The notes under the pieces are model-generated. The model saw nothing but the letters and a program-made list of their open reading frames with translations. It did not search any database and was not told the origin of the DNA. This document shows, one piece after another, positions 1-20,204 of a stretch of DNA of 64,000 nt; the stretch's first letter is position 1, and the number at the start of each line of letters is the position of its first letter. This stretch comes from Macrostomum lignano (taxonomy: Eukaryota), in assembly GCA_002269645.1 (NCBI GenBank), contig NIVC01000061.1, forward strand, positions 558,001 to 622,000, given 5' to 3'. The position numbers and the translations under genes are program-made.

Positions 1-25
1 ATGCTGACCCCACATAACCTTGCAG

Positions 26-1465
26 GCCCAGCAGGGCACGCCCAGCCTGAGCCAGGAGGAACTGGTTGAGCAGCTCCGCAGGGCCGAGCAGAGCTGCCAG
101 TCTCAACTGGCGCTGGGCCGCCTGACGAGCCTCGCCACCTCCGGCGCCGCCGCTGCTGCCAGCAACTGCTCCGGGCAATTCGACGGCTTCCTATGCTGGC
201 CACCGGCGCCCGCGAGCTCCGACGCGTCCCTGCCCTGTCCCGGCCAGGTGTTCGGCAATGAAGGCCGAGTGCGCTTCGCCAAACGACGCTGCCAGGCCGA
301 TGGTCGATGGCGGAGCAGCGGCAGCGATGGTGGCGAGTTTCACCCGCTCACTGCCTACTCCGACTGCTCAGAGCGCAATGCCAGTCTGGCAAGAAGCCTG
401 TACGAGTTGGTAAGCGGCTAAAAGTTCTTGAGAATTTACTACAGACTATTGGCATTTTTTTCTGGATTTTTTGTCATAGGTGTCCTCACTAGGTGTTTCA
501 CAGGTGTCTCAGGCGTGTCATAGGTGTATCATAGGGTGTGAATAGGGGAGTCATAGGTGTATCATAGGTGTATCATAGGCGTGTCACAGGTGTGTCACAG
601 GTGTGTCTAAACACAGGTGTCTCTAAACAGGTGTCATAGATGTATCATAGGTATGTCATAGATGTATCATAGGTGTGTCATAGATGTATCATAGGTGTGT
701 CATAGATGTGTCACAGTTGTATCATACGTGTGTCATAGATGTGTCATATGCTGCGTCGAAAAAGGTGTGCGATGGCATTCCAATTGGCTGTTCGAGCGAG
801 TCTGACAAAGCCTACTTGTCGGCATGGTCTCAAACACCGCCTGGAACACCGCCTGGAACAGCGCCTGGAACAGCGCCGCTCTCTGCGGTTAGGCGGGCCC
901 CAGACTGCACAAAATCGCAGCCATAAATGTAATTATTATACTCATTTCGGTTCCTCGCCATCAAAAACAGGTGCGCCTGACACAGGTGAGCAACGAGACC
1001 CAGCAGCTTCGACTCAGGCTGGAGAGGCACCTCTGCGCCCAAGTAAAAAAAGCGCACGGTGCGTCGCAGAGTCAGTCGGATGCCGCCGGCTGCCGTCCAG
1101 CCTTTGACGGTGTTCTGTGCTGGCCGACGGTGCCGGCTGGCACTTTCGGGCGCCAGCTCTGCCCGGACTACTTGAATGAAGTGCAGCGGGACAGGTACGC
1201 AACCAGGATGTGCCACGCTAACGGCACCTGGCACCTGGGCGGCTGGACCAACTTCTCCGACTGCCTGGCCGTGGAATCCTCTTCATCAAGTTTTGATGCT
1301 GCCGCTGCCGATGAAAGAGCTGTTGCGAAGGTTTGTCTGTCTGTCTGTCTGCCTGTCTGTCTTAGTGCCTGTCTATCTGTCTGTCTTAGTATCTGTCTGT
1401 CTGTCTGTCTCAGTGTCTTAGTGTCTGTCTGTCTGTCTGTCTGTCTGGCTGCCTGTCTGTCTGCC

Positions 1466-1522
<57 letters not shown>

Positions 1523-1601
1523 TAGTGTCTGTCTGTCTTAGTGTCTGTCTGTCTGTCTCAGTGTCTTAGTGTCTTAGTGTCTGTCTGTCTGGCTGCCTGC
1601 C

Positions 1602-1668
<67 letters not shown>

Positions 1669-1737
1669 GTGTCCGTCTTAGTGTCTGCCTGTCTGTGTGT
1701 CTGTCTTAGTGTCTGCCTGTCTGTGTGTCTGTCTTAG

Positions 1738-1830
<93 letters not shown>

Positions 1831-4800
1831 GCATGTCTGTCTGTCTGTCTTATTGCCTGTCTCAGTGTCTGCTTGTCTGTCATGATGTAACTCGATGTTG
1901 ATGTGCGTCATAGCAAGTGTCTGCTAAGTTGTTTCCAACCTAACAAATTGCAGAGACACCTGGCCATCATGAGCATGATTGGGCTGGTCGGGCACAGCCT
2001 CTCTCTATCCACTCTGCTGATTGGCATCGTTATTTTGACGAGCTTTCGGTAAAATATTTTTCCGTCTCAAAGGGTGAAAAAACTCATTTCCTGTCGTGTT
2101 CGAAGCCAGGGGATTTAGTCAAGTAGCTCTAAGAGGTGAAAGCATATTTATAAACTAAATGAGTATTTTGTTCTAACTGTCAGGCATTCTGAAGGTTTAA
2201 ATGTACAAATTTTCGGTTGTCGGAGAATACCAAACTTTTATTGCATCTTCTTGAATAAGTAAAAAGGGCTGTTGTCTATGGTCCTACCTGGCATCCTATT
2301 AGCTAGCAAAATTTTCACTGTAGAATATCTCTGCCTGTACATGCTCCACTGTTGGAAAATGTACTCTTTCCATTCCTTTTCTGGCTCCCAACTGCACATG
2401 CTTATCGTGCCATCACCTCCTTTCCTTTCTACAGGCGCCTTCACTGCCGTCGCAACTTCATCCACATCAATTTGTACTTGGCATTCACGCTGCGAGCAGT
2501 CAGCCATTTTGTTAACAGGGCCTTGTCTGAGAACGATCAGGTAAGCCGAGCGTCTTTAAAGCGTAAAGCAGTTTCTAAAGATTTTTGGAAAAATGAAGTT
2601 GATACTACTAGCGCTGAGTGTTTGTCAGTAGCAAGTAAAGAGCTATATAGGTATCATTTTTCGCCATAAAAATTTCAGACAACTCTGTGTCGGCTTAACC
2701 AAACGTTAATGACCTTCACAGTGATTGGGAGTTTCACCTGGGTCTTTGTCGAGGCCCTGCACCTGTACATACTGATCTTTGTCAGCGGCATGGGCAACGA
2801 ACGACTGTCAACGCCCGGCTACCTTGCCATTGGCTGGGGTTAGTGTCTGACTCGGGCAGTTTGCGATTATTTAAAGTACACGCAGGACTTAGAACTTAGG
2901 CGCCATAATATGGATACAAAATGAGCCATAATTTTAATCACAAACTTAACAAAACAGATCACAAATGAGTCACAAGATAGATCTCAAATGTGTTACAAGA
3001 TAGATCTCTAATGAGTCTCAGGATAGGACTCAAATAAGTCACAAGATAGATCTCAAATGAGTCACTTGAGTCACAAGATGGATCTCAAATAAGTCACAAG
3101 ATAGATCTTAAATGAGTCACAAAATGAATCTCAAATGAGTCACAAGATAGATCTCAAATAAGCCTCAGGACAGATCTCAAATGAGTCACAAGATAGATCT
3201 TAAATAAGTCATCAGACATAACTCAAATAAGTCATCAGACATAACTCAAATAAGTCATCAGACATAACTCAAATAAGTCATCAGACATAACTCAAATAAG
3301 TCATCAGACATAACTCAAATAAGTCATCAGACATAACTCAAATAAGTCATCAGATATAACTCAAATAAGTCATCAGACATAACTCAAATAAGTCATCAGA
3401 CATAACTCAAATAAGTCATCAGACATAACTCAAATAAGTCATCAGACATAACTCAAATAAGTCATCAGACATAACTCAAATAAGTCATCAGACATAACTC
3501 AAATAAGTCATCAGACATAACTCAAATAAGTCATCAGATATAACTCAAATAAGTCACAGGATAGATCTCAAATGAGTCACAAGGTACATCTCAAAAATGA
3601 GTCATCAGATATAACTCAAATAAGTCACAAGATAGGACTCAAATAAGTCACAAGGTACATCTCAAAAATGAGTCACAAGATAGATCTCAAATGAGTCACA
3701 AGATAGGACTCAAATGAGTCACAGGATAGATCTCAAATGAGTCATCAGATAGAACTCAAATAAGTCACAATTTTATCTATTTATTTACATTTTAGGCCTG
3801 AGCAGTCTAGTCACGATGGTCTGGGTGCTGCTCAGACTGCTGTTTGACAACACGAACTGCTGGCGCGAGTTCAAGCCGCTTGGCCCCGACATCTGGCTGC
3901 TCAACGTCTACTTGGCGCTGCTAGTGCTGGTGAGCACTGCTGGCCCAATGGCCGGCACACTCTCGAGTCTTTTCGGGGACTTCAGTAAAATTGCATTTCG
4001 CCACTGTCACTGCATGGGTGTCACTTTTTTCAGAATGATTTATTAATGAGTTCAGACTTAGCATTGCACGACCACTTTGAAATCATATTTTTGTCTGTCT
4101 ACATGTATGGGAGACGTTCACAGGGACATAATAAGTAGTTGAACCATCTAGCTACTCGCAGTACAGAAAGATTAATCATCACAAGCAGCAGAAAACTTCA
4201 ACCAGTCGACCACAAACTCTGCATCCGTGCACACAAACAAAAAAATTTCTCCGCAGCTGAACGCCATTCTGTTCGCGAAAATTGTGCGCGAGCTCTTCAT
4301 CAAGCTGAGACGGCAGGCGCCAGCCGATGCACCGACAGTTCAGCCCTATTTGTGAGTCCTGATGATGTTCAATAAGCGTCAATAATAATATTATATAATA
4401 AATTGCCGGCACCCTGGCACAACGCTTTTGGCGACAACTTCGTCCTGAGATCCCCGAGATGCTGAGGCAATTCTCCCAACTCCCTTGACACCTGAGCACA
4501 TGCAAGCGCGCCAATACTGTACACAGACAGGCACTCATGCACTCGCTCACACAGGGTGTAGTGCAGCCCTGACTTTCTAATTATCAGACATGTACACTCT
4601 GTGCCCTGGGGGTTGGCCCTCGTGGACATGAATTGCACGACAAGACCTCAGCCAATTTTCGCCCAGAAGCCCCGAATGCATTTGGCTTTCTACGTGTTGT
4701 TAACTACATACGAGTTTGTTCACTAAAGAGTAGCAAGAAGAGAATATGAGGCGTATCTCTCAAGGTATAAAGTTTCGAATTTCGATACTTCAAAGAGGCA

Positions 4801-6524
4801 CCAAAATCTGTCCGACATTCCCAGGAAGCTGTGGAAGTCTACCTGCCTCCTCATCCTGGTGTTCGGCATTTACTATCTCATCTTTCTACCCGTCACCATG
4901 GTGCCCAAGGACAAGCTGGGCAAAACGCTAACTATTGTGCACCTCTATTATGAGCACTTCTTTAACTCATTCCAGGTAAGTCAAAGGTTGATATTGATTG
5001 GGAACAATTCGATATAAAGACCTATGGAGCACTCGTACGCAGCAATTTGTACGTTTCTTGGTGTAGGCCTCTGTCTCTTGTCTTGGTACATGTAGACATG
5101 TATGAGCTCCTGCAATGCATCGAGCTTGTTTAGCCTCAATTACGCTTTTTTCTTGGAGGAACACTATCTTCATCTCCGACAATCCACAGGGCTTTTTCGC
5201 CGCCCTGCTGTTCTGTTTTATCAACTCCGAGGTCCGGAACGAGTTGCGACGCCAGGCCAGGAAGCTGCACTTGGCAGCCTGGCTGGATGCTGGAAACCGG
5301 CCGCGAATGGCCTTCAGAGGCAGCAGGGACAACACGGCTAGCAATGGCATCAACAACAACAACAGCGCCAGTCCACCTCAGCTAGCAGACTACAGGTCTC
5401 AGCAAAGGTCGGCACGTAGGAGCAGGAGGGATCTCAATGAGCGACTGACGGCAGGGAGAACCCGCGGAGGGAGCCAACGCCTGCGGGACGATCGGGAGAC
5501 AATGGAAGTGAGATGCTATTTTTGCTTTCACAGAACCCCCCCCCCCCAGCTTCTTACAGAAGAAACCCACAGAAAACCCAGAAGTTAGTCGTGCCTCTCG
5601 CTTCCCAAAGTCCTTTGTGTGTCCCTTCCTTCCCAGAACCCCCTAGTGTGTCTCTTCTTTCCCAGAACCCACTAGTGTGTCTCTTCTTTCCCAGAACCCA
5701 CTAGTGTGTCTCTTCTTTCCCAGAACCCCCTAGTGTGTCTCTTCTTTCCCAGAACCCACTAGTGTGTCTCTTCTTTCCCAGAACCCCCTAGTGTGTCTCT
5801 TCCTTCCCAGAACCCCCTAGTGTGTCTCTTCTTTCCCAGAACCCACTAGTGTGTCTCTTCCTTCCCAGAACCCCCTAGTGTGTCTCTTCCTTCCCAGAAC
5901 CCACTAGTGTGTCTCTTCTTTCCCAGAACCCACTAGTGTGTCTCTTCTTTCCCAGAACCCACTAGTGTGTCTCTTCTTTCCCAGAACCCACTAGTGTGTC
6001 TCTTCCTTCCCAGAAGTCCCTAGTGTGTCTCTTCCTTCCCAGAAGTCCCTAGTGTGTCTCTTCCTTCCCAGAAGTCCCTAGTGTGTCTCTTCCTTCCCAG
6101 AAGTCCCTAGTGTGTCTCTTCCTTCCCAGAAGTCCCTAGTGTCTCTGCCTTCCCAGAAGTCCCCAGTGTGTCCGTTCCTTCCAGAAGTCCCTAGTGTCTC
6201 TGCCTTCCCAGAAGTCCCACAGTGTGTCCGTTCCTTTCCAGAAGTCCCTATATAGTGTTTCTTCCTTCCCAGAACCCACTAGTGTGTCTCTTCTTTTCCA
6301 GAACCCCCTAGTGTGTCTCTTCTTCCTAGTGTGTCCCAGAAGTCCCTAGCGTGTCGTTTTCTTAATTCTTAGACCCACCTAATGTACTCATTCCCCCACT
6401 GTAAGTCTCAGCGAGTCGACATGAATAAGCTAGTAGAAAAATCTGAAACAAATTTCAGGCCTGCGAGAGCATACCGCTGCAGAGCATGGGTCGGCCTGCA
6501 TATTTTGAGGAAGTCAGCGAATAA
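26..6524 (+). CDS. Class B1 (secretin-like) GPCR with two tandem extracellular hormone-binding domains; 5' end outside window
   Basis: Hand-spliced exons 26-409, 971-1330, 1954-2048, 2435-2540, 2679-2838, 3796-3929, 4257-4351, 4825-4975, 5190-5507, 6459-6524; all GT-AG with consistent phases. Class B motifs: FDGxLCWP (twice), [67 protein letters not shown] overlaps the stop at 6520-6525. The last exon is the least certain. Confidence 0.93.
478..725. repeat. ~10-bp minisatellite (cataggtgt/catagatgt) in GPCR intron
   Basis: Direct tandem copies; explains ORF 684..926. Confidence 0.85.
1331..1880. repeat. (TGTC)n microsatellite starting at the GPCR donor site
   Basis: Direct; gives the spurious VCLS/TDRQ ORFs. 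Confidence 0.95.
2945..3770. repeat. ~23-bp minisatellite (aataagtcatcagacataactca and variants) in GPCR intron
   Basis: Unit period 23 measured at 3203/3226. Confidence 0.9.
5600..6330. repeat. 29-bp minisatellite (ctagtgtgtctcttctttcccagaaccca) in last GPCR intron
   Basis: Period 29 measured at 5643/5672. Confidence 0.9.
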
Positions 6525-7224
6525 AAACTTAGCTGTCTAATTGCCTATCGTTTACTGCCGCGGTCACAGAGTACTCCAAGAAACGTTGACACCATCATGT
6601 TGTTCCACTACTTTACTGTTAGTGACCTATATTTGTAGGGACATCTCAGCAAAACATGTTAACCGATTTACAAAATTTTATGCGCACAAACAGCTGGCAA
6701 CAGTGGGCAGGTTAGCTATTGATGAGGTCGGGCACTTACAAAATGAAGTTGTGTGTGTGTGTGCAAATTTACCAATGATCAGAATTTTTCGCTGTGTAAA
6801 TTTCCCAACGAATTGAAGTCGTATTTCCGCATCTTGCAAAACCCTCATAATGCATGAACAAACAATTTGCACTTGTACGCATGGCAGATGCAGGTGTTCC
6901 AAACAATGCCACGCATTCCACTGATACAATGTCAACCTTGACATTAATCCCAGTTGGAGAATTTAACTTCAGCTTTAGCAAAAATAGTCCACAGAACTTT
7001 TTTTCTGCAATAAACTCGCCTCTGAAATTCTCAAAGTTTTAACATATGCAATCTCATGGACTTAGCCCGTAAGCTGAGAACTTGTTCTGCCTTCCTTATT
7101 GAAACTGCATTCAACCTCCGGAAAGATCCTCAAGGGTGAAACAGGAAATTGAAATCCCGGAATTGCTCCAAATCGGCTGAAACCGTTGCGGACCAGGTGC
7201 AGGAAGTGGACAGCTCAAGGCGGT

Positions 7225-7231
7225 TATAAAA
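7225..7231 (+). promoter_or_regulatory. TATA box of the secreted mucin-like gene
   Basis: TATAAAA 85 nt upstream of ATG 7310. Confidence 0.6.
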
Positions 7232-7309
7232 GCTCCGATTTATGAGAAAAAGCTGCTCGAGTTCTGACTGGTTTCTTCAGTAAAATAAGACTACACTTGA
7301 AGGTAAAAT

Positions 7310-8296
7310 ATGATTTTTTGTCTGTCCACCTTGCTGCTTCTAGCAGCGACGGCTGCTCCACTGGCGACCGCCGCAACGGACGTTCGAACCTGCATCGCCA
7401 GCAGCACTTGCAACGCGTGCATGAGCTGCCTGCGACTCTACAGCTTGGAGCGGGTGAACGCCTTCTGCAACCAGATGTCCACCAGCGCCACTTGCACGAG
7501 CGAAACTGGCAGAGCGGCCTACCGGGCCAACCTGGAGAAAAGTCTCAAGTCCAACTGCGAGGCAAAGGGCTCCTGTGGCGTAGCAGCAGCAACAACCACT
7601 GAGGCACAGACAACAACCACTAAGGCGCCGCCAACAACCACCGAAGCGCTAACAACAACCACTGAAGCGCCGACAACAACCACTGAGGCGCCGACAACCA
7701 CTGAGGCGCCGACAACAACCACTGAGGCGCCGACAACAACCACCGAAGCGCCGACAACAACCTCCGAAGCGCCGACAACCACCGAAGCGCCGACAACAAC
7801 CACCGAAGCGCCGACAACAACCTCCGAAGCGCCGACAACAACCACCGAAGCGCCGACAACAACCACCGAAGCGCCGACAACAACCTCCGAAGCGCCGACA
7901 ACAACCACCGAAGCGCCGACAACAACCTCCGAAGCGCCGACAACAACCACTGAAGCGCCGACAACAACCACCGAAGCGACCACAACAACCACCGAAGTGA
8001 CAACAGGCGCTACAACCACTGAGGCGCCGGAGCCGCCAAAATGCAACTGGGACTGCCCGCGTGGTCGCCGTGGCCGCAGATGCCGACGCCGCCGACGCCG
8101 CTGCCGACGCCGTCATTGGCAGCAGCGGCCGGTAGAACCGCCGGTGGAGCCGCCGGTGGACGACATCATCCAGAAGTTGCTGGCCAAGCTGGACAGGTGG
8201 CTGCAGAGGCAAGGCCTCAACCTGGACGATCTGAAGCTGCTTCTCGAGATGGAATACAGCTTGCATTTCGGCAACGGCATCGGCCAAGACTGGTGA
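7310..8296 (+). CDS. Intronless secreted protein: signal peptide, 8-Cys domain, (TTTEAP)n mucin stalk, Arg/Cys-rich segment, helical C-terminus
   Basis: 328-aa ORF with ATG, hydrophobic leader (MIFCLSTLLLLAATAAPLATA), upstream TATA and downstream AATAAA. Confidence 0.88.
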   Translation: MIFCLSTLLLLAATAAPLATAATDVRTCIASSTCNACMSCLRLYSLERVNAFCNQMSTSATCTSETGRAAYRANLEKSLKSNCEAKGSCGVAAATTTEAQTTTTKAPPTTTEALTTTTEAPTTTTEAPTTTEAPTTTTEAPTTTTEAPTTTSEAPTTTEAPTTTTEAPTTTSEAPTTTTEAPTTTTEAPTTTSEAPTTTTEAPTTTSEAPTTTTEAPTTTTEATTTTTEVTTGATTTEAPEPPKCNWDCPRGRRGRRCRRRRRRCRRRHWQQRPVEPPVEPPVDDIIQKLLAKLDRWLQRQGLNLDDLKLLLEMEYSLHFGNGIGQDW

Positions 8297-8328
8297 TGAC
8301 GACAGATGACCAGCAGACTCCCAACTCG

Positions 8329-8334
8329 AATAAA
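8329..8334 (+). promoter_or_regulatory. Polyadenylation signal
   Basis: AATAAA 33 nt after the stop of 7310-8296. Confidence 0.6.
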
Positions 8335-8726
8335 ACCAACCAAACTGTTTTGGACAGTTTAGTGAGACTGGTGAATGGCGCGGTTTGGTGATAGAAAATT
8401 AAAACGGCTTCAAATTATTAACAGAACAGGCACAACTGCCCTGACTTATCAGTTTTGTTCTTTCTTTGAAAATCTAAACTCAGAAAGCAAAAAGGCGTTA
8501 GTAAACCAAGTCGAAGAGAAACGATTTGAATGCCTCAGAAAGCACATGCTTCAGAGGCTAATTAAACACAAACTACTATCAATAGTCAGAAGCAATCAAT
8601 TAGTTTACTACGAGCGTAGAAGGCGAAATAAGTTAGCTCGCACAAAATGCACTCTGAAGTACATGCTCTTTAACGAATTACGCGAATAATTTTGTAGTCT
8701 GGAAGGCGCCAGAGGGGGAAAGTTCA

Positions 8727-9520
8727 TCAGGTTTTATCTCTGCTGACAGCTGAGGCGATCAGCTCCTGGCGGATCTCCGCCCGCAACTGCTCGTACAGCC
8801 GCTGCCGTTCGGGACTCTCGGCCGCCTCCTCCAGCTGAAGCTGCCGTTCGATTTGCTTGCGCTTGAATATTTTGTCTGCGAAGGCCACGTTTGGCTGTTC
8901 TTTTAGGGCAAAGCTTTGCTTTAGGTTACTTATGAGGGTTCGCGGTAGTGTACATTGGGGGCAGAGTTTAGTGTGGGGTGAGGGGTTCGCAAGTGTGTAC
9001 ATTGGGGGCAGAGTTTACTGTGGGGTGAGGGGTTCGCAAGTGTGTACATTGGGGGTAGAGTTTAGTGTGGGGTGAGGGGTTCGCAAGTGTGTACATTGGG
9101 GGCAGAGTTTACTGTGGGGTGAGGGGTTCGCAAGTGTGTACATTGGGGGCAGAGTTTACTGTGGGGTGAGGGGGTTCACGAGTTGTGTACATTGGGGGCA
9201 GAGTTTACTGTGGGGTGAGGGGGTTCACGAGTTGTGTACATTGGGGGTAGAGTTTAGTGTGGGGTGATGAGATTCGCAAGTGTGTACACTAGGCTAAGTA
9301 CGTGTACAGTTTCGTGTAAGCAGAGTGAACTAAGCCAGTTGAACTCACAGAAAGTGATATCCCTCGGGCTCCAGACATTCATAAAAAACTCAAGTCCGGC
9401 ACCGCAGAACAGGCCGCCAAGCAGGGCTGTGCCAAATTGATAACGCAGCATCAGGCGCACCACCTGCGTAGCCAGGAGCCGGCGAGAGACTCTATCAATA
9501 AAACCCGACCAGGGGGCCAT
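8727..9520 (-). CDS. SMIM4: SMIM4/UQCC5-like mitochondrial complex III assembly microprotein (106 aa)
   Basis: Exons 9520-9349 and 8875-8727 (donor T|gtgagt, acceptor cgcag|AC, phase 1). LGGLFCGAGLEFFMNVWSPRDITFYKIFKRKQIERQ resembles, from recall, human SMIM4 FFVLGGTMEWIMIKVRVGQETFYDVYRRKASERQ. Confidence 0.75.
8945..9290. repeat. 47-bp minisatellite (~7 copies) in SMIM4 intron
   Basis: tacatt recurs at 8951/8998/9045. Confidence 0.9.
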
Positions 9521-10124
9521 GGCCGTCGGGTCGGCTCAGTCAACAGGCAGCGGACAGGTGAATTAATTAACTATCAAACTTTGCTTGCTACTGACCTGCG
9601 CAAAACAAGCGCACTGAAGGAAAGAAACTGACTATCATTAAAAACGGTCCTCAAAGGACACAGTTGGAAAATTATGTTTATAAGTGCAAATAAAACTTAC
9701 AAAATATATACTAAAGCAAGTGCTCTGAAATTCTATAAAAGTTAAACGTGTATTTTATTATATGACAGTAAACTCTACACGGAACCAAAATAGGAGCTAC
9801 AAAGAAAAAAAGTTAATCTAAAATCAGGACTGTAATTTTCCAATATGTAAAAGAGCGCATAACCAACAGTGCACACATCAGCTGATGAGAGAATTAACAC
9901 GGTGGAAGCAGTCACTGATCATTTTGATTCGGCATGATGCAACAAAAGCGTGGGCGATGAAATCGGTGGGCAAAAGCAGCACAGAATTCAGATATTGCAC
10001 CTTTGGCAGGGACAGACAGACAGGTGCAGAAACGATAAATAAATAAAATCTCAAACATGGACAAGCAAGACGCATGGCATGTAAATCTAACATTATCTCG
10101 TGTAAATTCGTCTGCTTTCTGCAT

Positions 10125-12601
10125 GCATCAATGAAGTGGGATGCATCAAGTTATCAATGAGCTGGGATGCATCAAGTTATCAATGAACTGGGATGCATCA
10201 AGTTATCAATGAGCTGGGATGCATCAAGTTATCAATGAACTGGGATGCATCAAGTTATCAATGAACTGAGATGCATCAAGTTATCAATGAGCTGGGATGC
10301 ATCAAGTTATCAATGAAGAGGGATGCATCAAGTTATCAATGAACTGGGATGCATCAAGTTATCAATGAACTGGGATGCATCAAGTTATCAAGGAACTGAG
10401 ATTTATTAAGTTATCAATGAGCTGGGATGCATCAAGTTATCAATGAACAGGGATGCATCAAGTTATCAATGAGCTGGGATGCATCAAGTTATCAATGAAC
10501 TGGGATTTATCAAGTTATCAAGGAACTGAGATTTATTAAGTTATCAAGGAACTGGGATGCATCAAGTTATCAATGAACTGGGATGCATCAAGTTATCAAT
10601 GAACTGGGATGCATCAAGTTATCAATGAACTGGGATGCATCAAGTTATCAATGAGCTGGGATGCATCAAGTTATCAATGAACTGGGATGCATCAAGTTAT
10701 CAATGAACTGGGATGCATCAAGTTATCAATGAACTGGGATGCATCAAGTTATCAAGGAACTGAGATTTATTAAGTTATCAATGAGCTGGGATGCATCAAG
10801 TTATCAATGAACAGGGATGCATCAAGTTATCAATGAACAGGGATGCATCAAGTTATCAATGAACTGGGATGCATCAAGTTATCAATGAGCTGGGATGCAT
10901 CAAGTTATCAATGAACTGGGATGCATCAAGTTATCAATGAGCTGGGATGCATCAAGTTATCAATGAACTGGGATGCATCAAGTTATCAATGAACTGGGAT
11001 GCATCAAGTTATCAATGAACTGGGATGCATCAAGTTATCAATGAACTGGGATGCATCAAGTTATCAATGAACTGGGATGCATCAAGTTATCAATGAACTG
11101 GGATGCATCAAGTTATCAATGAGCTGGGATTTATCAAGTTATCAAGGAACTGAGATTTATTAAGTTATCAAGGAACTGGGATGCATCAAGTTATCAATGA
11201 ACTGGGATGCATCAAGTTATCAATGAACTGGGATGCATCAAGTTATCAATGAACTGGGATGCATCAAGTTATCAATGAGCTGGGATGCATCAAGTTATCA
11301 ATGAACTGGGATTTATCAAGTTATCAATGAAGTGGGATGCATCAAGTTATCAATGAACTGGGATGCATCAAGTTATCAATGAGCTGGGATGCATCAAGTT
11401 ATCAATGAACTGGGATTTATCAAGTTATCAAGGAACTGAGATTTATTAAGTTATCAAGGAACTGAGATTTATTAAGTTATCAATGAGCTGGGATGCATCA
11501 AGTTATCAATGAGCTGGGATGCATCAAGTTATCAATGAACTGGGATGCATCAAGTTATCAATGAACTGGGATGCATCAAGTTATCAAGGAACTGGGATGC
11601 ATCAAGTTATCAAGGAACTGGGATGCATCAAGTTATCAATGAACTGGGATGCATCAAGTTATCAATGAACTGGGATGCATCAAGTTATCAATGAACTGGG
11701 ATGCATCAAGTTATCAATGAGCTGGGATGCATCAAGTTATCAATGAACTGGGATTTATCAAGTTATCAATGAAGTGGGATGCATCAAGTTATCAATGAAC
11801 TGGGATGCATCAAGTTATCAATGAGCTGGGATGCATCAAGTTATCAATGAACTGGGATTTATCAAGTTATCAAGGAACTGAGATTTATTAAGTTATCAAG
11901 GAACTGAGATTTATTAAGTTATCAAGGAACTGGGATGCATCAAGTTATCAATGAGCTGGGATGCATCAAGTTATCAATGAACTGGGATGCATCAAGTTAT
12001 CAATGAGCTGGGATGCATCAAGTTATCAATGAGCTGGGATTTATCAAGTTATCAAGGAACTGAGATTTATTAAGTTATCAAGGAACTGAGATTTATTAAG
12101 TTATCAATGAGCTGGGATGCATCAAGTTATCAATGAGCTGGGATGCATCAAGTTATCAATGAACTGGGATGCATCAAGTTATCAATGAACTGGGATGCAT
12201 CAAGTTATCAAGGAACTGGGATGCATCAAGTTATCAACGAACTGGGATGCATCAAGTTATCAATGAGCTGGGATGCATCAAGTTATCAATGAAGTGGGAT
12301 GCATCAAGTTATCAATGAAGTGGGATGCATCAAGTTATCAATGAGCTGGGATGCATCAAGTTATCAATGAAGTGGGATGCATCAAGTTATCAATGAACTG
12401 GGATGCATCAAGTTATCAATGAACTGAGATGCATCAAATTATCAATGAAGTGAGATGCATCAAGTTATCAATGAGCTGGGATGCATCAAGTTATCAATGA
12501 GCTGGGATGCATCAAGTTATCAATGAGCTGGGATGCATCAAGTTATCAATGAGCTGGGATGCATCAAGTTATCAATGAGCTGGGATGCATCAAGTTATCA
12601 A
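10125..12601. repeat. 26-bp satellite (gaactgggatgcatcaagttatcaat), ~95 copies
   Basis: Period 26 at 10141/10167; homogeneous, no spacers. Confidence 0.97.
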
Positions 12602-13599
12602 ATAACAACATGCTGTGCACAGAAGTTTTAATAAATACAGCAAAAGTAAACAATGAGAACAATATACGACAGAATGAGGACCGGGATGACCAGTGAATTT
12701 CCGCTCAATGCCATTCGAATATTAATATAATTAATAAACCATTGAAGCAGGAGAGCAGAGTGGCATAGAAGGCTGCAGGTGAAACTGTGGATATTCTACT
12801 ATACACTAAGAAACAATCCACTCTAAAAAAAGCCTCGTAACAAGTTCATAGATTCGATTCAGTTGTCGGCATGTGAGCAATGAGAAAGTGAAGCTCACAT
12901 ACAATTATTCACAGAAATAATGCAAGTCGTGCGTGCGCAGATAATGTAAACAAATTAAAAGCTAATACATGGTTAGCAGCAGAGCGCGGTGCCTTTAAAG
13001 AGTAAATTAATATTCCTTAGTCACTGCAGTGTTTAAACTGGAGTGAAAATCATTTCACAATAGGCATAGCGAAACAAATGAGCACTTGCAGACTGTACAA
13101 ATTGCTAATACATAACCTCATTCTACTGAGATATTAGCACTATTAAGTAGTGTCTAACGCAAGTTTTAGTTCAATAGGCTTCATTGCTCATTAGCACCTT
13201 TGCACAGATAAATTTGATTAAAAAGCATTTTTAAAGGGATGCCCACTTTGAGAGTGACTGAGGCCGAGGCCAGACTAGAAACACGGGGAAAAGAAATGTT
13301 TACCGTAGAACTGCAATGAAGGTAAACAAGCTGCGCCCACAAAATACATTGCATTGTTTTAGACAACGGCAACTCTTCAAAACTAAACTACGGTTTCTTA
13401 GAAACTATTTGAAGGCCGAGTTCTAAGCAAGGAACTTTGCACTTTAGATCAAAGGCACTAATATCATTGTTAACATCTCCGCAGTGCCAACTTTGCGTTA
13501 AAGCCAACCAGCCGGCCTTCAAATAGTTTCTAAGAAATGAATTGCGTCAAAGTCGCCGTCAAGTCTCGCATGAGCATCTTGAATGCTACGAGACTGAAC

Positions 13600-15260
13600 T
13601 CAGAAGCAGGACTCAATACCGACAGGCCAGCCGTGGCGGTTGAGCAGCAGCAGGTAGGGCTGGCAGTTGACAAAGTGCACATTCTGGCCGACAGTTCGCA
13701 GCACAAACGAGTGAAAGACACCGCCATGGCCGACCCAAAGCACCCGGCGGCCGGCCAGCACCTGCGGCGCGATGGCCTTGGCAAAGTAGCCGCGCACCCG
13801 GTCGAAGGCCTCCAGGCAGGTCTCGGACTCGGGCAGCAGGTCCCGCGGCACGCCGTCATATTTGGCCTCGTGGCCCGGCCACAGGGGGTCGCTGCGGGCC
13901 AGCGGCGGCGGCCGGTCGTTCCAGGCCGACAGGACGCCGCGGCGGTTGGCCTGGCCGACCAGGGTGCCGTACATCTGCTCGTTGAGCTGCCAGGAGGTCT
14001 GAATTGGGCACACTGGGCTCTGCGGTGCGCAGCGGGGCGGTTCGCGGTTTAACGAATTAATTCGCATGATATGACAGCACTCTCATCACTCACCCTGCCA
14101 ATCTCATCACTCACCCTGCCAATCTCATCACTCACCCTGCCAATCTCATCACTCACCCTGCCAATCTCATCACTCACCCTGCCAATCTCATCACTCACCC
14201 TGCCAATCTCATCACTCACCCTGCCAGTCCAATTTCACTCATCCCAGCCATCAGCCAGTCCAAATCTCACCAATCCCAGCCAGTCCAATCTCATTCATCC
14301 CACCCAGCCAGTCCAAATCTCACCCATCCCAGCCAGTCCAATCTCACCCATCCCATCCAGTCCAATCTCACCCATCCCAGCCAGTCCAATCTCACCAATC
14401 CCAGCCAGTCCAATCTCATTCATCCCAGCCAGTCCAATCTCACCAATCCCAGCCAGTCCAATCTCACCAATCCCAGTCAGTCCAATCTCACCAATCCCAG
14501 CAAGTCCAATCTCACCAATCCCAGCCAGTCCAATCTCATTCATCCCAGCCAGTCCAATTTCATTCATCCCACCCAGCCAGTCCAAATCTCACCCATCATA
14601 GCCAGTCCAATCTCACCAATCCCAGCCAGTCCAATCTCACCCATCCCATTCCCAGCCAGTCCAATCTCACCCATCCCATTCCCAGCCAGTCCAATCTCAC
14701 CCATCCCATTCCCAGCCAGTCCAATTTCATTCATCCCACCCAGCCAGTCCAAATCTCACCCATCATAGCCAGTCCAATCTCACCAATCCCAGCCAGTCCA
14801 ATCTCACCCATCCCATTCCCAGCCAGTCCAATCTCACCAATCCCAGCCAGTCCAATCTCACCAATCCCAGTCAGTCCAATCTCACCTCCCGGCCCTCAAA
14901 GCCGGCAGTGGCGGCAGGGCTCAGCTGGCAGCAGATGATCTGACAGGTCCTCCTGGCCCGCTGCAGGACGCTGCAGAAGGCCAGCTCAGGCGACCAGTTG
15001 GCCTCGCGCAGTTGCCTAGCAACGCAGAGTGCCTGCGCCTCGCCCTGGCTGGTCAACGCTGAGTCCTGCCAGCCGCTCAGCTCCCTGTTGGCGTTGGCAA
15101 CTGACTCCCCGTGCCGCACCAGCACCAGCTGACCGGCGGCTAGCGGCGTCCCAGCCGCGGCTGGTTGGCATGGCAACAAGGCCGGCTGGATCGGTTCATT
15201 CGTGCCCTGCGGCTGCGGCGGCGACTGCTGCCCGTCTCGCGGCTCTTTTTCGCTTGCCAT
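13600..15260 (-). CDS. Histidine phosphatase superfamily, dPGM/phosphoglycerate mutase-like protein
   Basis: Exons 15260-14886 and ~14019-13600 (phase 0; alternative acceptor 13998). Motifs LVLVRHGES, SGWQDSALT, LQRA, SWQLNEQMYG, PESETC, VLWVGHGG. Confidence 0.88.
14085..14885. repeat. Two adjoining minisatellites (21-bp ctcatcactcaccctgccaat; ~24-bp cccagccagtccaatctcaccaat) filling the PGAM-like intron
   Basis: Direct; explains ORFs 14071..14601, 14295..14585, 14564..14752. Confidence 0.92.
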
Positions 15261-15409
15261 CTGGACGGGATGGCTGAAGGACAAACAGACAGCAGAGGGA
15301 CGGATGAACACGAGCTGATGACTGTCGGATTGGGGAGGATTTTAGGATATAGGAGATGAGAAAAGATTAATAGAGATTCAAAATGGGATAATAATAAGAC
15401 AATAAAAAT

Positions 15410-15720
15410 GAGATGAGATGTGACAAGACAAGATGAAATGAGACTAGAGGATATGAGACGAGATAAAATAAGATTTGATGAGATAAGACGAGATGAAATG
15501 AGATTACATGAGATGAGACGAGATGAAATAAGATTAGATGAGATAAGACGAGATGAAATGAGATTAGATGAGATAAGACGAGATTACATGAGATTACATG
15601 AGATGAGACGAGATTACATGAGATTACATGAGATGAGACGAGATTACATGAGATTACATGAGATGAGACGAGATTACATGAGATTACATGAGATAAGACA
15701 GTATGAAATGAGACAAAATG
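15410..15720. repeat. (GAGAT)n-derived pentamer array
   Basis: Direct. Confidence 0.9.
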
Positions 15721-16089
15721 AGTTAACTGTAGAAAAACATAATACAAATTAAGTTTAAAGGCAACACGAAAGCCGATTAAAAAATTGATATCCCTCATTT
15801 ACAAGCGGGAAAAACATGTATAATTGTATTACTTTAGAATCAGACAATAGGACTGATACAATATTCAATATAGCTAAGAGTACTTCAAGTAATTGAAACT
15901 GGTGATAGATTAGCATCGGGACTGAGAAGTAGGTCTAGAAATCCGGGATACTGACAATGAGTGACAATCCGTTGACAGCTAGCTAGCTCATGTCGCTCCA
16001 CTATGCGGGCCTGTATAGGATGGTAATGAACAGAGGAGAAAGGTGAGGAAAATAGGAAGCAGAGGGTGACAGATGACTGCAGGAGGGGA

Positions 16090-16420
16090 AGGGCAAAAGG
16101 GTAGGAGAGGAGGGTAGGAGGGGTAGGAGAGGAGGGTAGGAGGGGTAGGAGAAGAGGGTAGGAGGGGTAGGAGGAGGGTTGGAGGGGTAGGAGAAGAGGG
16201 TAGGAGGGGTAGGAGGAGGGTAGGAGGGGTAGGAGAAGAGGGTAGGAGGGGTAGGAGGAGGAGGGGTAGGAGGGGTAGGAGGGGTAGGAGAAGAGGGTAG
16301 GAGGGGTAGGAGAAGAGGGCAGGAGGGTAGGAGGGAAGGGTAGGAGGGTAGGAGGGAAGGGTAGGAGGGTAGGAGGGAAGGGTAGGAGGGTAGGAGGGAA
16401 GGGTAGGAGGGTAGGAGAGG
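16090..16420. repeat. G-rich (ggaggggtagga)-type array
   Basis: Direct. Confidence 0.9.
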
Positions 16421-16466
16421 TCAGGGAGAGGACAGAATCAGACGAGGGAAAGAGCGCAACAAAGAC

Positions 16467-17045
16467 TCAGTGGTTCTCCACAAAGCCGATGGTGGCGCTG
16501 AGTTTCTGAATAGCTTCAAAGGTGTCCATCAGCGGGGCATCGGCGGCGGTGGCGGCGGGCTCAGGCGGGGCCAGGAAGCCGCTGTCGCCCTGGTCGGGGC
16601 CGACTCGCCAGTTGGGCAGGGCTTCGGCGACGCCGCTGGGCGACACGCCGACCTCCTTGGCGAGGCGGGCGCGGCCGATGCAGGAGTAGGCGGCGGCCAG
16701 GGCGGCGGCGCGATCCCGCCGGGTCTTCGTCACCAGCCTTGCCAGCAGGTCGGCCAGATCCGGTGGCATCGGCGCCGCTGTCGAGGCAGCCGCGTCCGCC
16801 GCAGCTGTGTAGAATGTTGAATAGTCGCGCGAGAACAGCGCGGCGCCGCAGCGCCAGATATTAGCCAGAGGCTGGCTGGCGCCGGAGCGCAGCGCCTGAG
16901 GAGTCCGGCGCCATAACAGGCGCGCATTGCACAGGTCGCCGCTAAGCAGGTAGAGCAGCAGCAGGCGGCCTGCTTGCTGATTGTCTAGCGGCGGGCTGGC
17001 GAGCTCCTGGCGCTCCAGGGCTGCGATTTGGGAAGCCTCCGATTC
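16467..17045 (-). CDS. COPS8: COP9 signalosome subunit 8; start codon not present in this exon
   Basis: LERQEL..LLLLYLLSGDLCNARLLWRRTPQAL..IWRCG..RDY..AYSCI..IGFVENH matches recalled human CSN8 ([44 protein letters not shown]). Acceptor atatttccag|GAA at 17045. Confidence 0.9.
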   Translation of the reverse strand, partial: ESEASQIAALERQELASPPLDNQQAGRLLLLYLLSGDLCNARLLWRRTPQALRSGASQPLANIWRCGAALFSRDYSTFYTAAADAAASTAAPMPPDLADLLARLVTKTRRDRAAALAAAYSCIGRARLAKEVGVSPSGVAEALPNWRVGPDQGDSGFLAPPEPAATAADAPLMDTFEAIQKLSATIGFVENH

Positions 17046-17885
17046 CTGGAAATATGCGGGGATGAAGTGGCTGCAGACTCCTACTGATTTATTACAAGGA
17101 TGAACCAAAAGTTCGTGCACTTTTTACGATCAGTTTTTTTTTTGTGGAGGGGGCTTGCCGTCTCGCATGCACAACATGCTGCACATGAGCAAGTCAAGGA
17201 CCACTTTAGTATAACACTAGGACCAGTCTGAATACCAGTCTGAAGCAGCCTGGGAAACGAATGCATAGAATACACGAGCAGACCAGTTCAGCTTGGAATG
17301 AAATCATAGCGAGACAAGTTTTGTCTCTTATATACATGTTTTACAGTGTATATTTAAAACTTGCAGCACTGTCAAATGGCACATCAAGTCCCTTTTAGAC
17401 GCAATTTCGTGAAAAGCTTACATTAAGAAAATAGATCAAATACTGTCGTGGTTAGGCGGCATAAGAAACCAGGAATGAAATTATTCAACGACAGACAGGG
17501 GAGACGATTATTACACAAAAACATCTAAAACTAAGTTAGATACGCATCTACAAAAACTTTTATCAAACTCTGCAACGATAAATAAGCAATATATTATATT
17601 AGCTTATCAAGAGGTCCGACTGGCGTTCATCAGAGATTTGAAAGGGCAATAACGTTAGGCACATGCTGTAATGTTGAGTAAATCTAACACGCAATGAGAG
17701 GCGACTTCCATGACAGATGATAGATTGATGCGATAGTCAACTTTTAGAATTGAACAACAAAAAACTGCTCAAAGCCTGCTCACTCCAACATGCTCAAGAG
17801 AGACGCTATTAATCCTGCGTTTTGTCTTCTTCAAGTTTGCATATCGAGCCAGTCTTCTTCAAGTCAAGGACATGTCGCTAAGGAG

Positions 17886-18815
17886 TCACTGGCAGGCGAT
17901 GCCCAGACCCATCCTAAAGGTTGACCGCACAACATCGCGTCGGATTCGCACCAGCCGATCCAGCAGGCAGCTGGGTGGCAGCGACTGGCGTTCAGGTCGG
18001 CGAGGTCGCCAGATCGGACGCTGCCAGTACCACTCCCTACGCTGCAGTTCCTGCTGCAGCCTCTTCTGCTGCTCCCGTTGCTGCTGCTGCTGCTGCTCCT
18101 GAAGCTCTTCAACACTGCGTCGAAGCTCCACGCTGTCCGCCAGCAAGCGACGCGCTTCGATGCCTCGACTGCCGAATCGTTCGGCCGCTTCCAGAACTCG
18201 CTGGGCCGCGTTGACTCTGTCGCGGAGGGCGCGAATTCTGGTCCAAGACAAGTCCGTATTGCCCGACACCGGGTCGGAGCGGGCTGAGTGAACAGATCTT
18301 GACGACTGCGGAATCGGAGCTCTAGCCGATATCAGCGGACGCGATCGCATCCAGCGACGACACTGCCATCGAGGACTGCACGGTAGCGACCAGCAGTGGC
18401 CCTCGGAAGTGCTTTTTCCGGTTTCATCCATGGCCAGCGCCATCGCTGTGCGCAGCTTCCTGGCTAGCCAGGCGGGCAGGGCCGGTCGGAGCCCGCCTGC
18501 CGTGCTGGCCCAACTGCGGCCAGTGCTGACCAGAGGCTCCAGAGCGTCTGCACCAACTGGCGGCTCGTCTGAGCCAAGCAGCAGCGACGGCACAAAGTCT
18601 GGCTTCTGTGGAAGCTGCGGCGGATTAGAATCTAGCACTTCATCAATATTAGTCTCCTGCGCTTGAGTCGAGTCCGGCTCCGACTGTTCGTTAAGCGAAA
18701 CGCATTGCTCGAGACTATCTGCCAGCGACTTCTCAGCCACCGTGTCCGCCTTCTCGACTTGTTCAGCTTCATCAACTGAGGCTGGATTTGACTCCGGAAG
18801 CGATTGAATCTCCAT
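17886..18815 (-). CDS. Orphan single-exon protein (~309 aa): acidic disordered N-terminus, C-terminal coiled coil with poly-Gln
   Basis: Long non-repetitive ORF with ATG at 18815 and an AG acceptor 9 nt upstream; no family recognised. Confidence 0.6.
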   Translation of the reverse strand: MEIQSLPESNPASVDEAEQVEKADTVAEKSLADSLEQCVSLNEQSEPDSTQAQETNIDEVLDSNPPQLPQKPDFVPSLLLGSDEPPVGADALEPLVSTGRSWASTAGGLRPALPAWLARKLRTAMALAMDETGKSTSEGHCWSLPCSPRWQCRRWMRSRPLISARAPIPQSSRSVHSARSDPVSGNTDLSWTRIRALRDRVNAAQRVLEAAERFGSRGIEARRLLADSVELRRSVEELQEQQQQQQREQQKRLQQELQRREWYWQRPIWRPRRPERQSLPPSCLLDRLVRIRRDVVRSTFRMGLGIACQ

Positions 18816-18855
18816 GCGCTTCGACTGCGCGAACAAATTACTATTTCGAGGACGA

Positions 18856-19507
18856 ATGCTTGCCGCTCGCTCTCTGGCTAGCTGGGTTGCCAGCTCAAAT
18901 AAAGATCTCGGGTGAGAGCTATGAAGAGAGAGCAGAGCAGCTCAAAGACAACACAAATTTTATAAGCCCCCCCCCACCCGAGAACTTAAAGAAAAATAAG
19001 CGAGCGACGACCTTCGTTAGCGCACTAAGAATGGTACAGCAGCGCAGTAAGCGGGGCGGGGCGGGTCACACGCCACTCAAAGTAGAAACTGTTGCTGCGC
19101 TAAGCACCCACAACCCCCCTCCCCCAGTGCTCAGCAACTCTATGCGTCCAACTTGAGTTCCTTACCAGCGTAAGTTCGACGCCGCGCTCTGCTAGTACTT
19201 AAATGGCCCGTGCTGAAACAAAGCTTCTATTTGGCAACCCCCGCTGTCAACCAGTATAATAGAAATTAATGGATAGTCCAAAACTCTTCCATTAGATTAA
19301 CAATGCCGAATGCGTGCCAAAATGCCAAATAAAATATTTTTCCAAAGAAAGATGACGCCGGTCCAAGCTATAGAGTTTCAAGTGGAGCACTGCTGGATCC
19401 AGGGGCCTTTTGTCCTTCATCCCATTCTAATTCGGGATCATGTGACAGGCCTGTTTTTTATTAGCAATGAAAATAGAAGAGAGCAGCATTGGCAACAGCA
19501 ACAATAG
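18856..19507 (+). CDS. Putative small spliced gene (~90 aa) with a presequence-like N-terminus
   Basis: Candidate exons 18856-18911 (GG|gtgaga), 19128-19169 (cccccag|..GC|gtaagt), 19348-19507; frame stays open. No homology recognised. Confidence 0.3.
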
Positions 19508-20204
19508 CGTGACCCCAGCAGGGGTCTGACCTGCTGTGTAGAATTAGTCTCTCATTCTCTCGCGGGGCTATTTGCCAGGCTTTAATTTAATTATTATTAG
19601 TGCCCAGCGAGACATCATTAAGATGCCAATTATCTGTGTCGATAGAAAACGCGCCGCCTTCCCAGCTATTCAGCAATGTTTACATTGGAGACGAGACGAA
19701 ACAGTCACAGAAAAAGCAATTGGCAACGCTACACTCACTCGCAGTAAAATGCTGGCCCCAATGAAAACCGATTTTTTGTCAAGTTCCCACATGCCACCAC
19801 CATCCAAGTAAGGCTAAGGCCTGTCTCATTTTATCAGCCTAGTTTGGCACCCGTGTTGCACTGGAACTAATAGAGCGCAGAGCTGTACTTGGGAGAGGCA
19901 TTCAGACAACAGGCATTTTCTCTCGATTCCAAGGCTCTTTCATCGCCGCATTCCCACGATTATAATAAATACTTCTGCAAGCAGTCCTAACATTACCAAA
20001 AAAGAAATAGAACTCTTTTAGGACAGTTATTTTATTATAGACCACCTAATTATGCACATATGTAACGCAATAACATAAAAAACTGTAAAACTTTGTTGAA
20101 ACAACCGTGCCTTTCTAGAAGACCATATTAGATATCAACTCATTAAATACTTCTGACACTCGAATGCCATCGGCAGTTAATTAATTTGAATGACACTAGC
20201 AGGT

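Follow-up and report, generated by a model that had tools for sequence, protein, structure and literature searches.

In the textbook picture, a class B1 G protein-coupled receptor (GPCR) consists of one ectodomain and one core of seven transmembrane helices (7TM). A gene at the start of a 64,000-nucleotide (nt) stretch of the genome of the flatworm Macrostomum lignano (contig NIVC01000061.1, positions 558,001 to 622,000, forward strand; referred to below as the window) appears to depart from this picture, with two separate exons, here called A and B, each encoding a complete ectodomain. The question that this locus raises is whether one receptor carries both domains or whether splicing chooses between them. 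The contig belongs to NIVC00000000 (Mlig_3_7), the genome of M. lignano DV1 (PMC5730564, PMC11641670). Our analysis favors, with moderate confidence, an intact, unannotated gene that encodes a PTH-receptor-like class B1 GPCR and most likely retains both exons, each with an HRM domain, in its mature mRNA.

The gene model comprises nine exons on the plus strand, spliced at GT-AG introns and consistent in frame throughout (window positions 26 to 5588; Table 1). Exons A and B are each open in a single frame only, and both translations begin with an amphipathic N-terminal helix bearing the first cysteine, followed by the core pattern C..FDG..CWP...CP...R.C..(D/N)G.W...(S)DC. The six cysteines occupy residues 24, 48, 57, 71, 89, and 114 of the exon A translation and residues 22, 41, 50, 64, 81, and 98 of the exon B translation. 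Against the Pfam HRM profile (PF02793; gathering cutoff, 26.2 bits), exon A alone scores 49.9 bits (E value of 4.3e-13, profile positions 2 to 65 of 66) and exon B alone scores 60.8 bits (E value of 1.6e-16, nearly end to end), the distal domain A thus scoring below the proximal domain B. The hidden Markov model scan proposed with the original prediction recovered HRM twice in the spliced protein, together with an almost complete 7tm_2 domain (PF00002; E value of 6.5e-54, profile positions 4 to 249 of 250), and these HRM and 7tm_2 matches are far beyond chance. Coordinates, motifs, and splice sites all agree with the prediction of two complete six-cysteine class B1 ectodomain exons that are in phase 0-0 and have lengths divisible by 3.

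Domain A has kept all of the invariant ectodomain residues (C48, D53, C57, W58, C71, C89, G93, W95, and C114), as well as P59 and P72, and domain B likewise keeps the invariant residues. Domains A and B share 30% identity, and a tblastn search of the 64-kb window found no third HRM copy. An assembly artifact or a recent duplication of the HRM exons was considered and is ruled out by this level of identity, by a second contig that carries the same region, and by a paralog with the same domains, in keeping with the earlier claim that the ectodomains are strongly diverged. An AlphaFold2 (AF2) model covering residues 1 to 532 of the spliced protein, without the distal C-terminal tail, has a mean predicted local distance difference test (pLDDT) score of 78 and contains two ectodomains, seven transmembrane (TM) helices, and helix 8. 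In this model, domains A and B each adopt the helix-plus-beta-hairpin fold of class B ectodomains, a helical connector spans residues 119 to 130 and 136 to 160, and the stalk runs unbroken into TM1. Modeled alone (pLDDT of 71), domain A finds only class B ectodomains among its structural matches, with that of PTH1R first, in a model that, resting on an alignment of HRM homologs, leans toward this fold.

With respect to receptor class, the best match by sequence in the PDB (phmmer) is human PTH1R (222 bits, E value of 8e-65), followed among others by VIPR1 (199 bits), PTH2R (184 bits), and CALCR (141 bits), the last ranking only 59th to 60th. These alignments take in domain B and the 7TM core and leave domain A outside. 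When the AF2 model was compared with known structures using Foldseek, PTH1R and PTH2R occupied the top 13 places. Apart from the paralog described below, the closest proteins in the databases are sequences from molluscs, annelids, and nemerteans named PTH/PTHrP receptor-like or secretin receptor-like, and fish PTH2R. From exon A onward the protein contains no GAIN/GPS module, as Pfam reports HRM and 7tm_2 alone. The sequence matches and the structural model thus point to a PTHR-like (cluster B) rather than a calcitonin-like class B1 GPCR, with a 7TM core nearer to PTHR than to CALCR, CRHR, PDFR, or the glucagon/secretin groups, an approximate subfamily placement that was made without a tree. 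In protostomes, class B1 receptors related to PTHR, GCGR, and SCTR make up cluster B (Cardoso et al. 2014, PMC3961327). The window receptor resembles cluster B receptors, PTH1R, and PTH2R in its 7TM core, in domain B, in having a six-cysteine ectodomain adjoining TM1, and in its RLHC and FNSFQGF motifs. It differs from them in having a much shorter extracellular loop 1 (ECL1) and, above all, in the number of ectodomains, since the members retrieved have one HRM each, whereas the window gene and its paralog have two.

This paralog (P0001 in our scan) provided the most direct view of how the two exons are joined. It is an M. lignano protein of 583 amino acids, named G_PROTEIN_RECEP_F2_4 domain-containing protein in UniRef, that is 39% identical to the window receptor and was the sole match below an E value of 1e-30 when 1.84 billion representative proteins were scanned exhaustively with phmmer. 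We rejected its interpretation as an ortholog from another species, as the window itself comes from M. lignano, being 100% identical to contig NIVC01000061.1. Its domain order is A-B-7TM, as in the window gene. The two A domains align with 68 bits and the two B domains with 86 bits, compared with 44 to 50 bits crosswise. This pairing of A with A and B with B implies that the duplication that gave rise to the two domains predates the split of the paralogs and that both genes have since kept both domains. In the paralog, the two domains meet, with zero insertion, at the residue homologous to the junction of exons A and B in the window (...YEL|VRLTQVS in the window gene and ...AKR|LQVTKVS in the paralog, with the bar marking the junction). 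As the M. lignano proteins in GenBank and UniProt are TransDecoder open reading frames (ORFs) from an RNA-seq transcript assembly (PMC5730564), they are transcript derived, and the A-B junction of the paralog is most likely an observed splice. We conclude from these comparisons that the tandem arrangement is old and conserved and that it is probably present in mRNA. Of the two outcomes originally envisaged for this gene, the tandem two-ectodomain receptor is therefore the one we favor, given the A-B-7TM order and the seamless junction of the paralog.

Several observations weigh against this reading. First, the paralog is an imperfect model. It is 5' partial, has no initial methionine, lacks TM1 and TM4-5, and contains 33 extra in-frame residues (at about 470 to 505) between FFNSFQ and GFF. 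This insert sits exactly at the position of the phase-0 intron 4976-5189 of the window gene, and the paralog looks like an intron-retaining or misassembled transcript model. Moreover, it is an assumption that an intron separates A from B in the paralog at all. Second, the gene is called on neither of the two contigs that carry it in the transcript-based GenBank annotation, and in a collection of 15 billion proteins, searched with phmmer through its 1.84 billion representatives, nothing reached 50% identity to the ectodomain. Expression of the window copy is thus unproven. Third, neither exon A nor the 2.7 kb upstream of it on the sister contig yielded a start codon or a signal peptide. Finally, any role of domain A is pure inference.

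The absence of a gene call is no proof of silence, as the GenBank annotation pipeline removed novel transcripts below 0.5 reads per kilobase per million (RPKM) and transcripts overlapping repeats (PMC5730564). Low expression or the repeat-overlap filter is the likely cause here. Short-period tandem arrays fill almost all introns and flanks of the receptor gene (window positions 472 to 748, 1334 to 1881, 2949 to 3768, and 5617 to 6326), with repeat units of 11, 8/28, 23/46, and 29 nt, the 29-nt array beginning about 30 nt past the stop codon. Similar arrays occur upstream of the sister copy, at positions 1 to 360, 720 to 1430, and 2080 to 2715 of the stretch taken from NIVC01001134.1.

That contig holds a second copy of the whole region at 96 to 98.6% identity, with insertions and deletions within the repeat arrays. 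Window positions 1 to 12133 match it at 98.6%, and positions 10595 to 20000 match it at about 96%. Such a duplicated region fits the known redundancy of the neopolyploid Mlig_3_7 assembly. Between the two copies, the receptor coding sequences differ at two sites only, which makes the ratio of nonsynonymous to synonymous substitution rates between them uninformative.

The gene's 5' end deserves separate consideration. Exon A contains no in-frame methionine, and an in-frame stop codon at positions 5 to 7 closes the frame 21 nt upstream, so the start codon must come from elsewhere. Tandem repeats make up most of the 2.7 kb that lie upstream of the sister copy, and in this stretch (positions 1 to 2721 taken from NIVC01001134.1) we found no convincing exon that combines a methionine, a hydrophobic segment, and a phase-0 donor, only weak candidates. 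The spliced leader of M. lignano ends in ...TTGCATG, and its trans-splice acceptor motif is [T/C]TNCAG (PMC8629364). The exon A acceptor, TTGCAG, fits this motif, and an ATG supplied by the spliced leader would share the frame of this phase-0 exon. The partial ORF of the paralog begins 23 residues before the first cysteine, just as exon A does with its first codon, which implies that the transcript assembled for it starts at the boundary of the homologous exon. Spliced-leader sequences had been removed prior to assembly of the M. lignano transcripts (PMC5730564). The start of the paralog and the acceptor both fit trans-splicing at exon A. An upstream exon that was not assembled fits equally well. 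If the gene is trans-spliced at exon A, the receptor's ectodomains would number exactly two and a classical signal peptide would be missing, a puzzle for a disulfide-rich N terminus of some 250 residues.

Based on these data, we propose the following model for the receptor. A single ectodomain exon would have been tandemly duplicated in a macrostomid ancestor, before the lineages of the two M. lignano paralogs parted, and exons A and B would both be constitutively spliced. The resulting protein would consist, in order, of the distal domain A, a short helical connector, the proximal domain B, a stalk, and the 7TM core. Activation of class B1 receptors follows an established two-domain model. 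In this scenario, domain B, which adjoins TM1 and is closest to the ectodomains of single-ectodomain relatives, would capture the C-terminal part of the ligand and present its N terminus to the 7TM core. Domain A, with its structural core whole and its surface motifs drifted, may serve as an accessory module, perhaps by offering a longer or bivalent ligand a second point of contact, by providing a site for a coreceptor or another partner, or by regulating access to domain B as a lid.

A survey of other receptors with more than one HRM, made by an exhaustive protein scan and a local HRM profile, puts this architecture into perspective. Among teleosts, a protein named CGRP type 1 receptor from Stegastes partitus (XP_008287491; P0016/P0165) carries four HRMs in front of a single 7tm_2 core. 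It corresponds to a fish calcitonin receptor, that of pufferfish, which reportedly has four hormone-binding domains as well. Like the window gene, the teleost calcitonin/CGRP-type receptors have complete HRMs in series before one 7tm_2 core, and the distal domains score below the proximal one. Unlike it, they belong to the calcitonin-type family and to another phylum and differ in copy number. Among arthropods, RefSeq proteins named CGRP type 1 receptor-like have two HRMs in Ischnura, Hetaerina, Centruroides, Nymphon, Cloeon, and Penaeus, and these receptors span Odonata, Ephemeroptera, Decapoda, Scorpiones, and Pycnogonida. They share the HRM-HRM-7tm_2 architecture of the window gene, with about 30 to 90 residues separating the two domains and with both domains kept in all listed isoforms. 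They differ from it in having a calcitonin-type core and ectodomains with the signature FDGW.CW (seen in P0018, P0022, and P0058), which is absent from both domains A and B. In all genuine multi-HRM cases, the isoforms retrieved keep every HRM, and the distal HRM scores below the proximal one. A PDF-receptor model from a dipteran has two HRMs as well.

Two further candidates, from Tachypleus tridentatus (XP_076330114; P0017) and Haliotis rubra (XP_046553576; P0020), were not counted as multi-ectodomain receptors. Their domain order is HRM-7TM-HRM-7TM, and they are probably fusions of neighboring class B1 genes arranged in tandem. The survey also returned a protein of 352 amino acids from a Logan assembly (P0100), with two HRMs on either side of a Thr/Glu-rich linker and one C-terminal hydrophobic segment but no 7tm_2 domain. 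It may be a non-GPCR membrane protein with HRMs.

The window receptor thus shares the architecture of the multi-HRM calcitonin-type receptors without being a member of that group. Since the other receptors are of the calcitonin type and the flatworm genes are of the PTHR type, the architecture arose independently. The novelty that had been claimed for the locus is too strong. None of the PTHR-type relatives retrieved, the paralog aside, has a second HRM. Multi-HRM class B1 receptors as such are already known from the calcitonin-type receptors of teleosts and arthropods, so the original concern that double-HRM receptors might turn out to be described elsewhere proved justified in part, in the calcitonin-type and not in the PTH-receptor-type family. 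Searches of open-access full texts turned up neither PTHR-like receptors described as having a double HRM nor an account of the double domain in arthropods. The M. lignano gene is the first multi-ectodomain example that we found in the PTHR lineage and the first in a flatworm, which makes it moderately unusual and not unprecedented.

Four other readings of the locus have to be weighed, three of them rivals of the tandem receptor. In the first, exons A and B are spliced alternatively, either as mutually exclusive or as cassette exons, to yield single-ectodomain receptors in which one 7TM core is given two ligand specificities. Adjacent homologous exons of equal phase and nearly equal length (384 and 360 nt) are a classic substrate for mutually exclusive splicing, skipping of either exon preserves the frame, and the 14-residue tail that follows the sixth cysteine of domain A could act as a stalk to TM1. 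Inclusion of both exons is in frame as well, however, and none of the features we looked at (the reading frame, the 561-nt intron, and the GT-AG introns) enforces exclusivity, the intron between the two exons being long enough and of the same U2 type. In addition, the transcript-derived paralog bears both domains, the multi-HRM receptors of arthropods and teleosts retain all of their HRMs in each isoform retrieved, and 30% identity is far more divergence than is typical of mutually exclusive pairs. The ectodomain swap that had been proposed alongside the tandem receptor thus finds no positive evidence here, where frame and intron permit double inclusion and the paralog displays it, and we consider alternative use of the two exons unlikely.

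A second possibility builds on the tandem receptor and specifies both its start and its function. In this scenario, the mRNA starts at exon A through the AUG of the spliced leader, the two ectodomains bind different determinants, either two peptides or the two ends of one long peptide, and the receptor integrates two signals. The acceptor motif and the 5' end of the paralog are consistent with such a start, just as they are with an upstream exon, and the missing signal peptide would be a puzzle. We offer the combination only tentatively, as one of low probability. If true, it would represent an independently evolved PTHR-lineage version of a poorly understood multi-ectodomain design.

In a third explanation, the duplicate at this locus is silent or in decay, or else exon A is a remnant that splicing now passes over, and the double HRM has no present function in this copy. 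The missing gene call on both contigs, the lack of a matching protein in the large collections, and the unsuccessful search for a start codon or signal peptide all favor this view. So does the nature of the only two coding differences between the genomic copies, A43T and N47K, which are both nonsynonymous and both in exon A. These substitutions, however, lie in a low-complexity Ala/Ser loop outside the fold, and the annotation dropped transcripts of low expression as well as those overlapping repeats, of which the introns of this receptor are full. The gene itself has nine open exons with canonical splice sites, a full-length 7tm_2 domain, and all invariant ectodomain residues in both domains, a degree of intactness that is unlikely after a long divergence from a paralog of 39% identity unless the gene has been under selection. 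A silent or decaying locus is quite unlikely.

The last explanation, in which exon A ends a separate upstream transcript for a soluble HRM protein and the receptor mRNA is trans-spliced at exon B to encode a single ectodomain, is very improbable, because the exon B acceptor AAACAG misses the motif [T/C]TNCAG that the exon A acceptor fits, the exon A donor GTAAGC is strong, and the paralog joins A to B within one ORF, even though about 30% of M. lignano genes are trans-spliced and polycistronic units exist (PMC5730564, PMC8629364), the spliced leader ends in an ATG that a phase-0 exon would continue in frame, and reading through the exon A donor meets a stop after three codons (VSG*).

Returning to the gene structure that underlies the tandem receptor, the features of the locus are listed in Table 1. 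The stop codon is predicted at positions 5586 to 5588, unless the GT at position 5509 serves as a donor.

Table 1. Features of the receptor gene, in window coordinates
Feature	Position	Strand	Details or basis
Splice acceptor TTGCAG	20..25	+	Sequence; cis acceptor or candidate spliced-leader trans-splice acceptor
Exon A, distal ectodomain (N-terminal helix and HRM, six Cys)	26..409	+	384 nt, 128 codons, phase 0-0; ttgcAG acceptor, GTaagc donor
Intron A/B	410..970	+	561 nt; GTaagc donor, aaacAG acceptor
Arrays in intron A/B	472..748; 833..877	+	11-nt tandem array; 12-nt array
Exon B, membrane-proximal ectodomain (N-terminal helix and HRM, six Cys, WTNFSDC motif) and stalk	971..1330	+	360 nt, 120 codons, phase 0-0; aaacAG acceptor, GTttgt donor
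Intron after exon B	1331..1953	+	Nearly all (TGTC)n-type tandem repeat (1334..1881)
Exon 3, end of stalk and TM1	1954..2048	+	Gene model, Pfam, AF2
Exon 4, RRLHC motif and TM2	2435..2540	+	Gene model, PDB alignment, AF2
Exon 5, TM3, intracellular loop 2 (ICL2), and start of TM4	2679..2838	+	Gene model, AF2
Exon 6, TM4, short ECL2, and start of TM5	3796..3929	+	Gene model, AF2
Exon 7, TM5 and ICL3	4257..4351	+	Gene model, AF2
Exon 8, TM6, ECL3, and start of TM7, ending in ...FFNSFQ	4825..4975	+	Gene model, AF2
Exon 9, remainder of TM7, helix 8, and C-terminal tail	5190..5588	+	Predicted 3' end

Beyond the receptor gene, the window contains further large tandem arrays, for example, at 42.7 to 43.5 kb, 45 to 47 kb, 47.8 to 49.9 kb, and 55.9 to 56.9 kb. 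A single-exon gene on the plus strand (positions 7310 to 8296), annotated on the sister contig, encodes a secreted mucin-like protein of 328 amino acids without a Pfam match, with a signal peptide, a head rich in Cys, about 25 repeats of the TTTEAP type, and a basic Cys/Arg tail. On the minus strand, positions 16467 to 17045 encode a CSN8/PSMD8-type protein (PF10075; 192 amino acids) that is identical to one encoded on two contigs of GCA_002269645.1. The other annotated neighbors are a histidine phosphatase (His_Phos_1; 268 amino acids), a small UPF0640-like protein, and a 309-amino-acid protein without a Pfam family; these three and the CSN8/PSMD8-type gene all lie on the strand opposite to the receptor. 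An ORF of 237 amino acids at positions 25761 to 26474 of the minus strand resembles leucine-rich repeats (F-box/LRR-like).

In conclusion, the locus bears on a picture, that of one ectodomain per receptor, on which the two-domain activation model and drug design on PTH1R, GLP-1R, and CALCR both rest. Serial ectodomains have emerged three times independently, in the calcitonin-type receptors of teleosts, in those of arthropods, and in the macrostomid PTHR-like receptors, and in all three the distal copy has kept its fold and drifted in sequence. Such a recurrence suggests a benefit to function for which nobody has an explanation. For M. lignano, our analysis indicates that the reference gene set misses a complete neuropeptide receptor gene, probably owing to its repeat-filled introns. 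As this species is amenable to transgenesis and RNA interference, the locus would be a convenient place to probe what an extra ectodomain does in a class B1 receptor.

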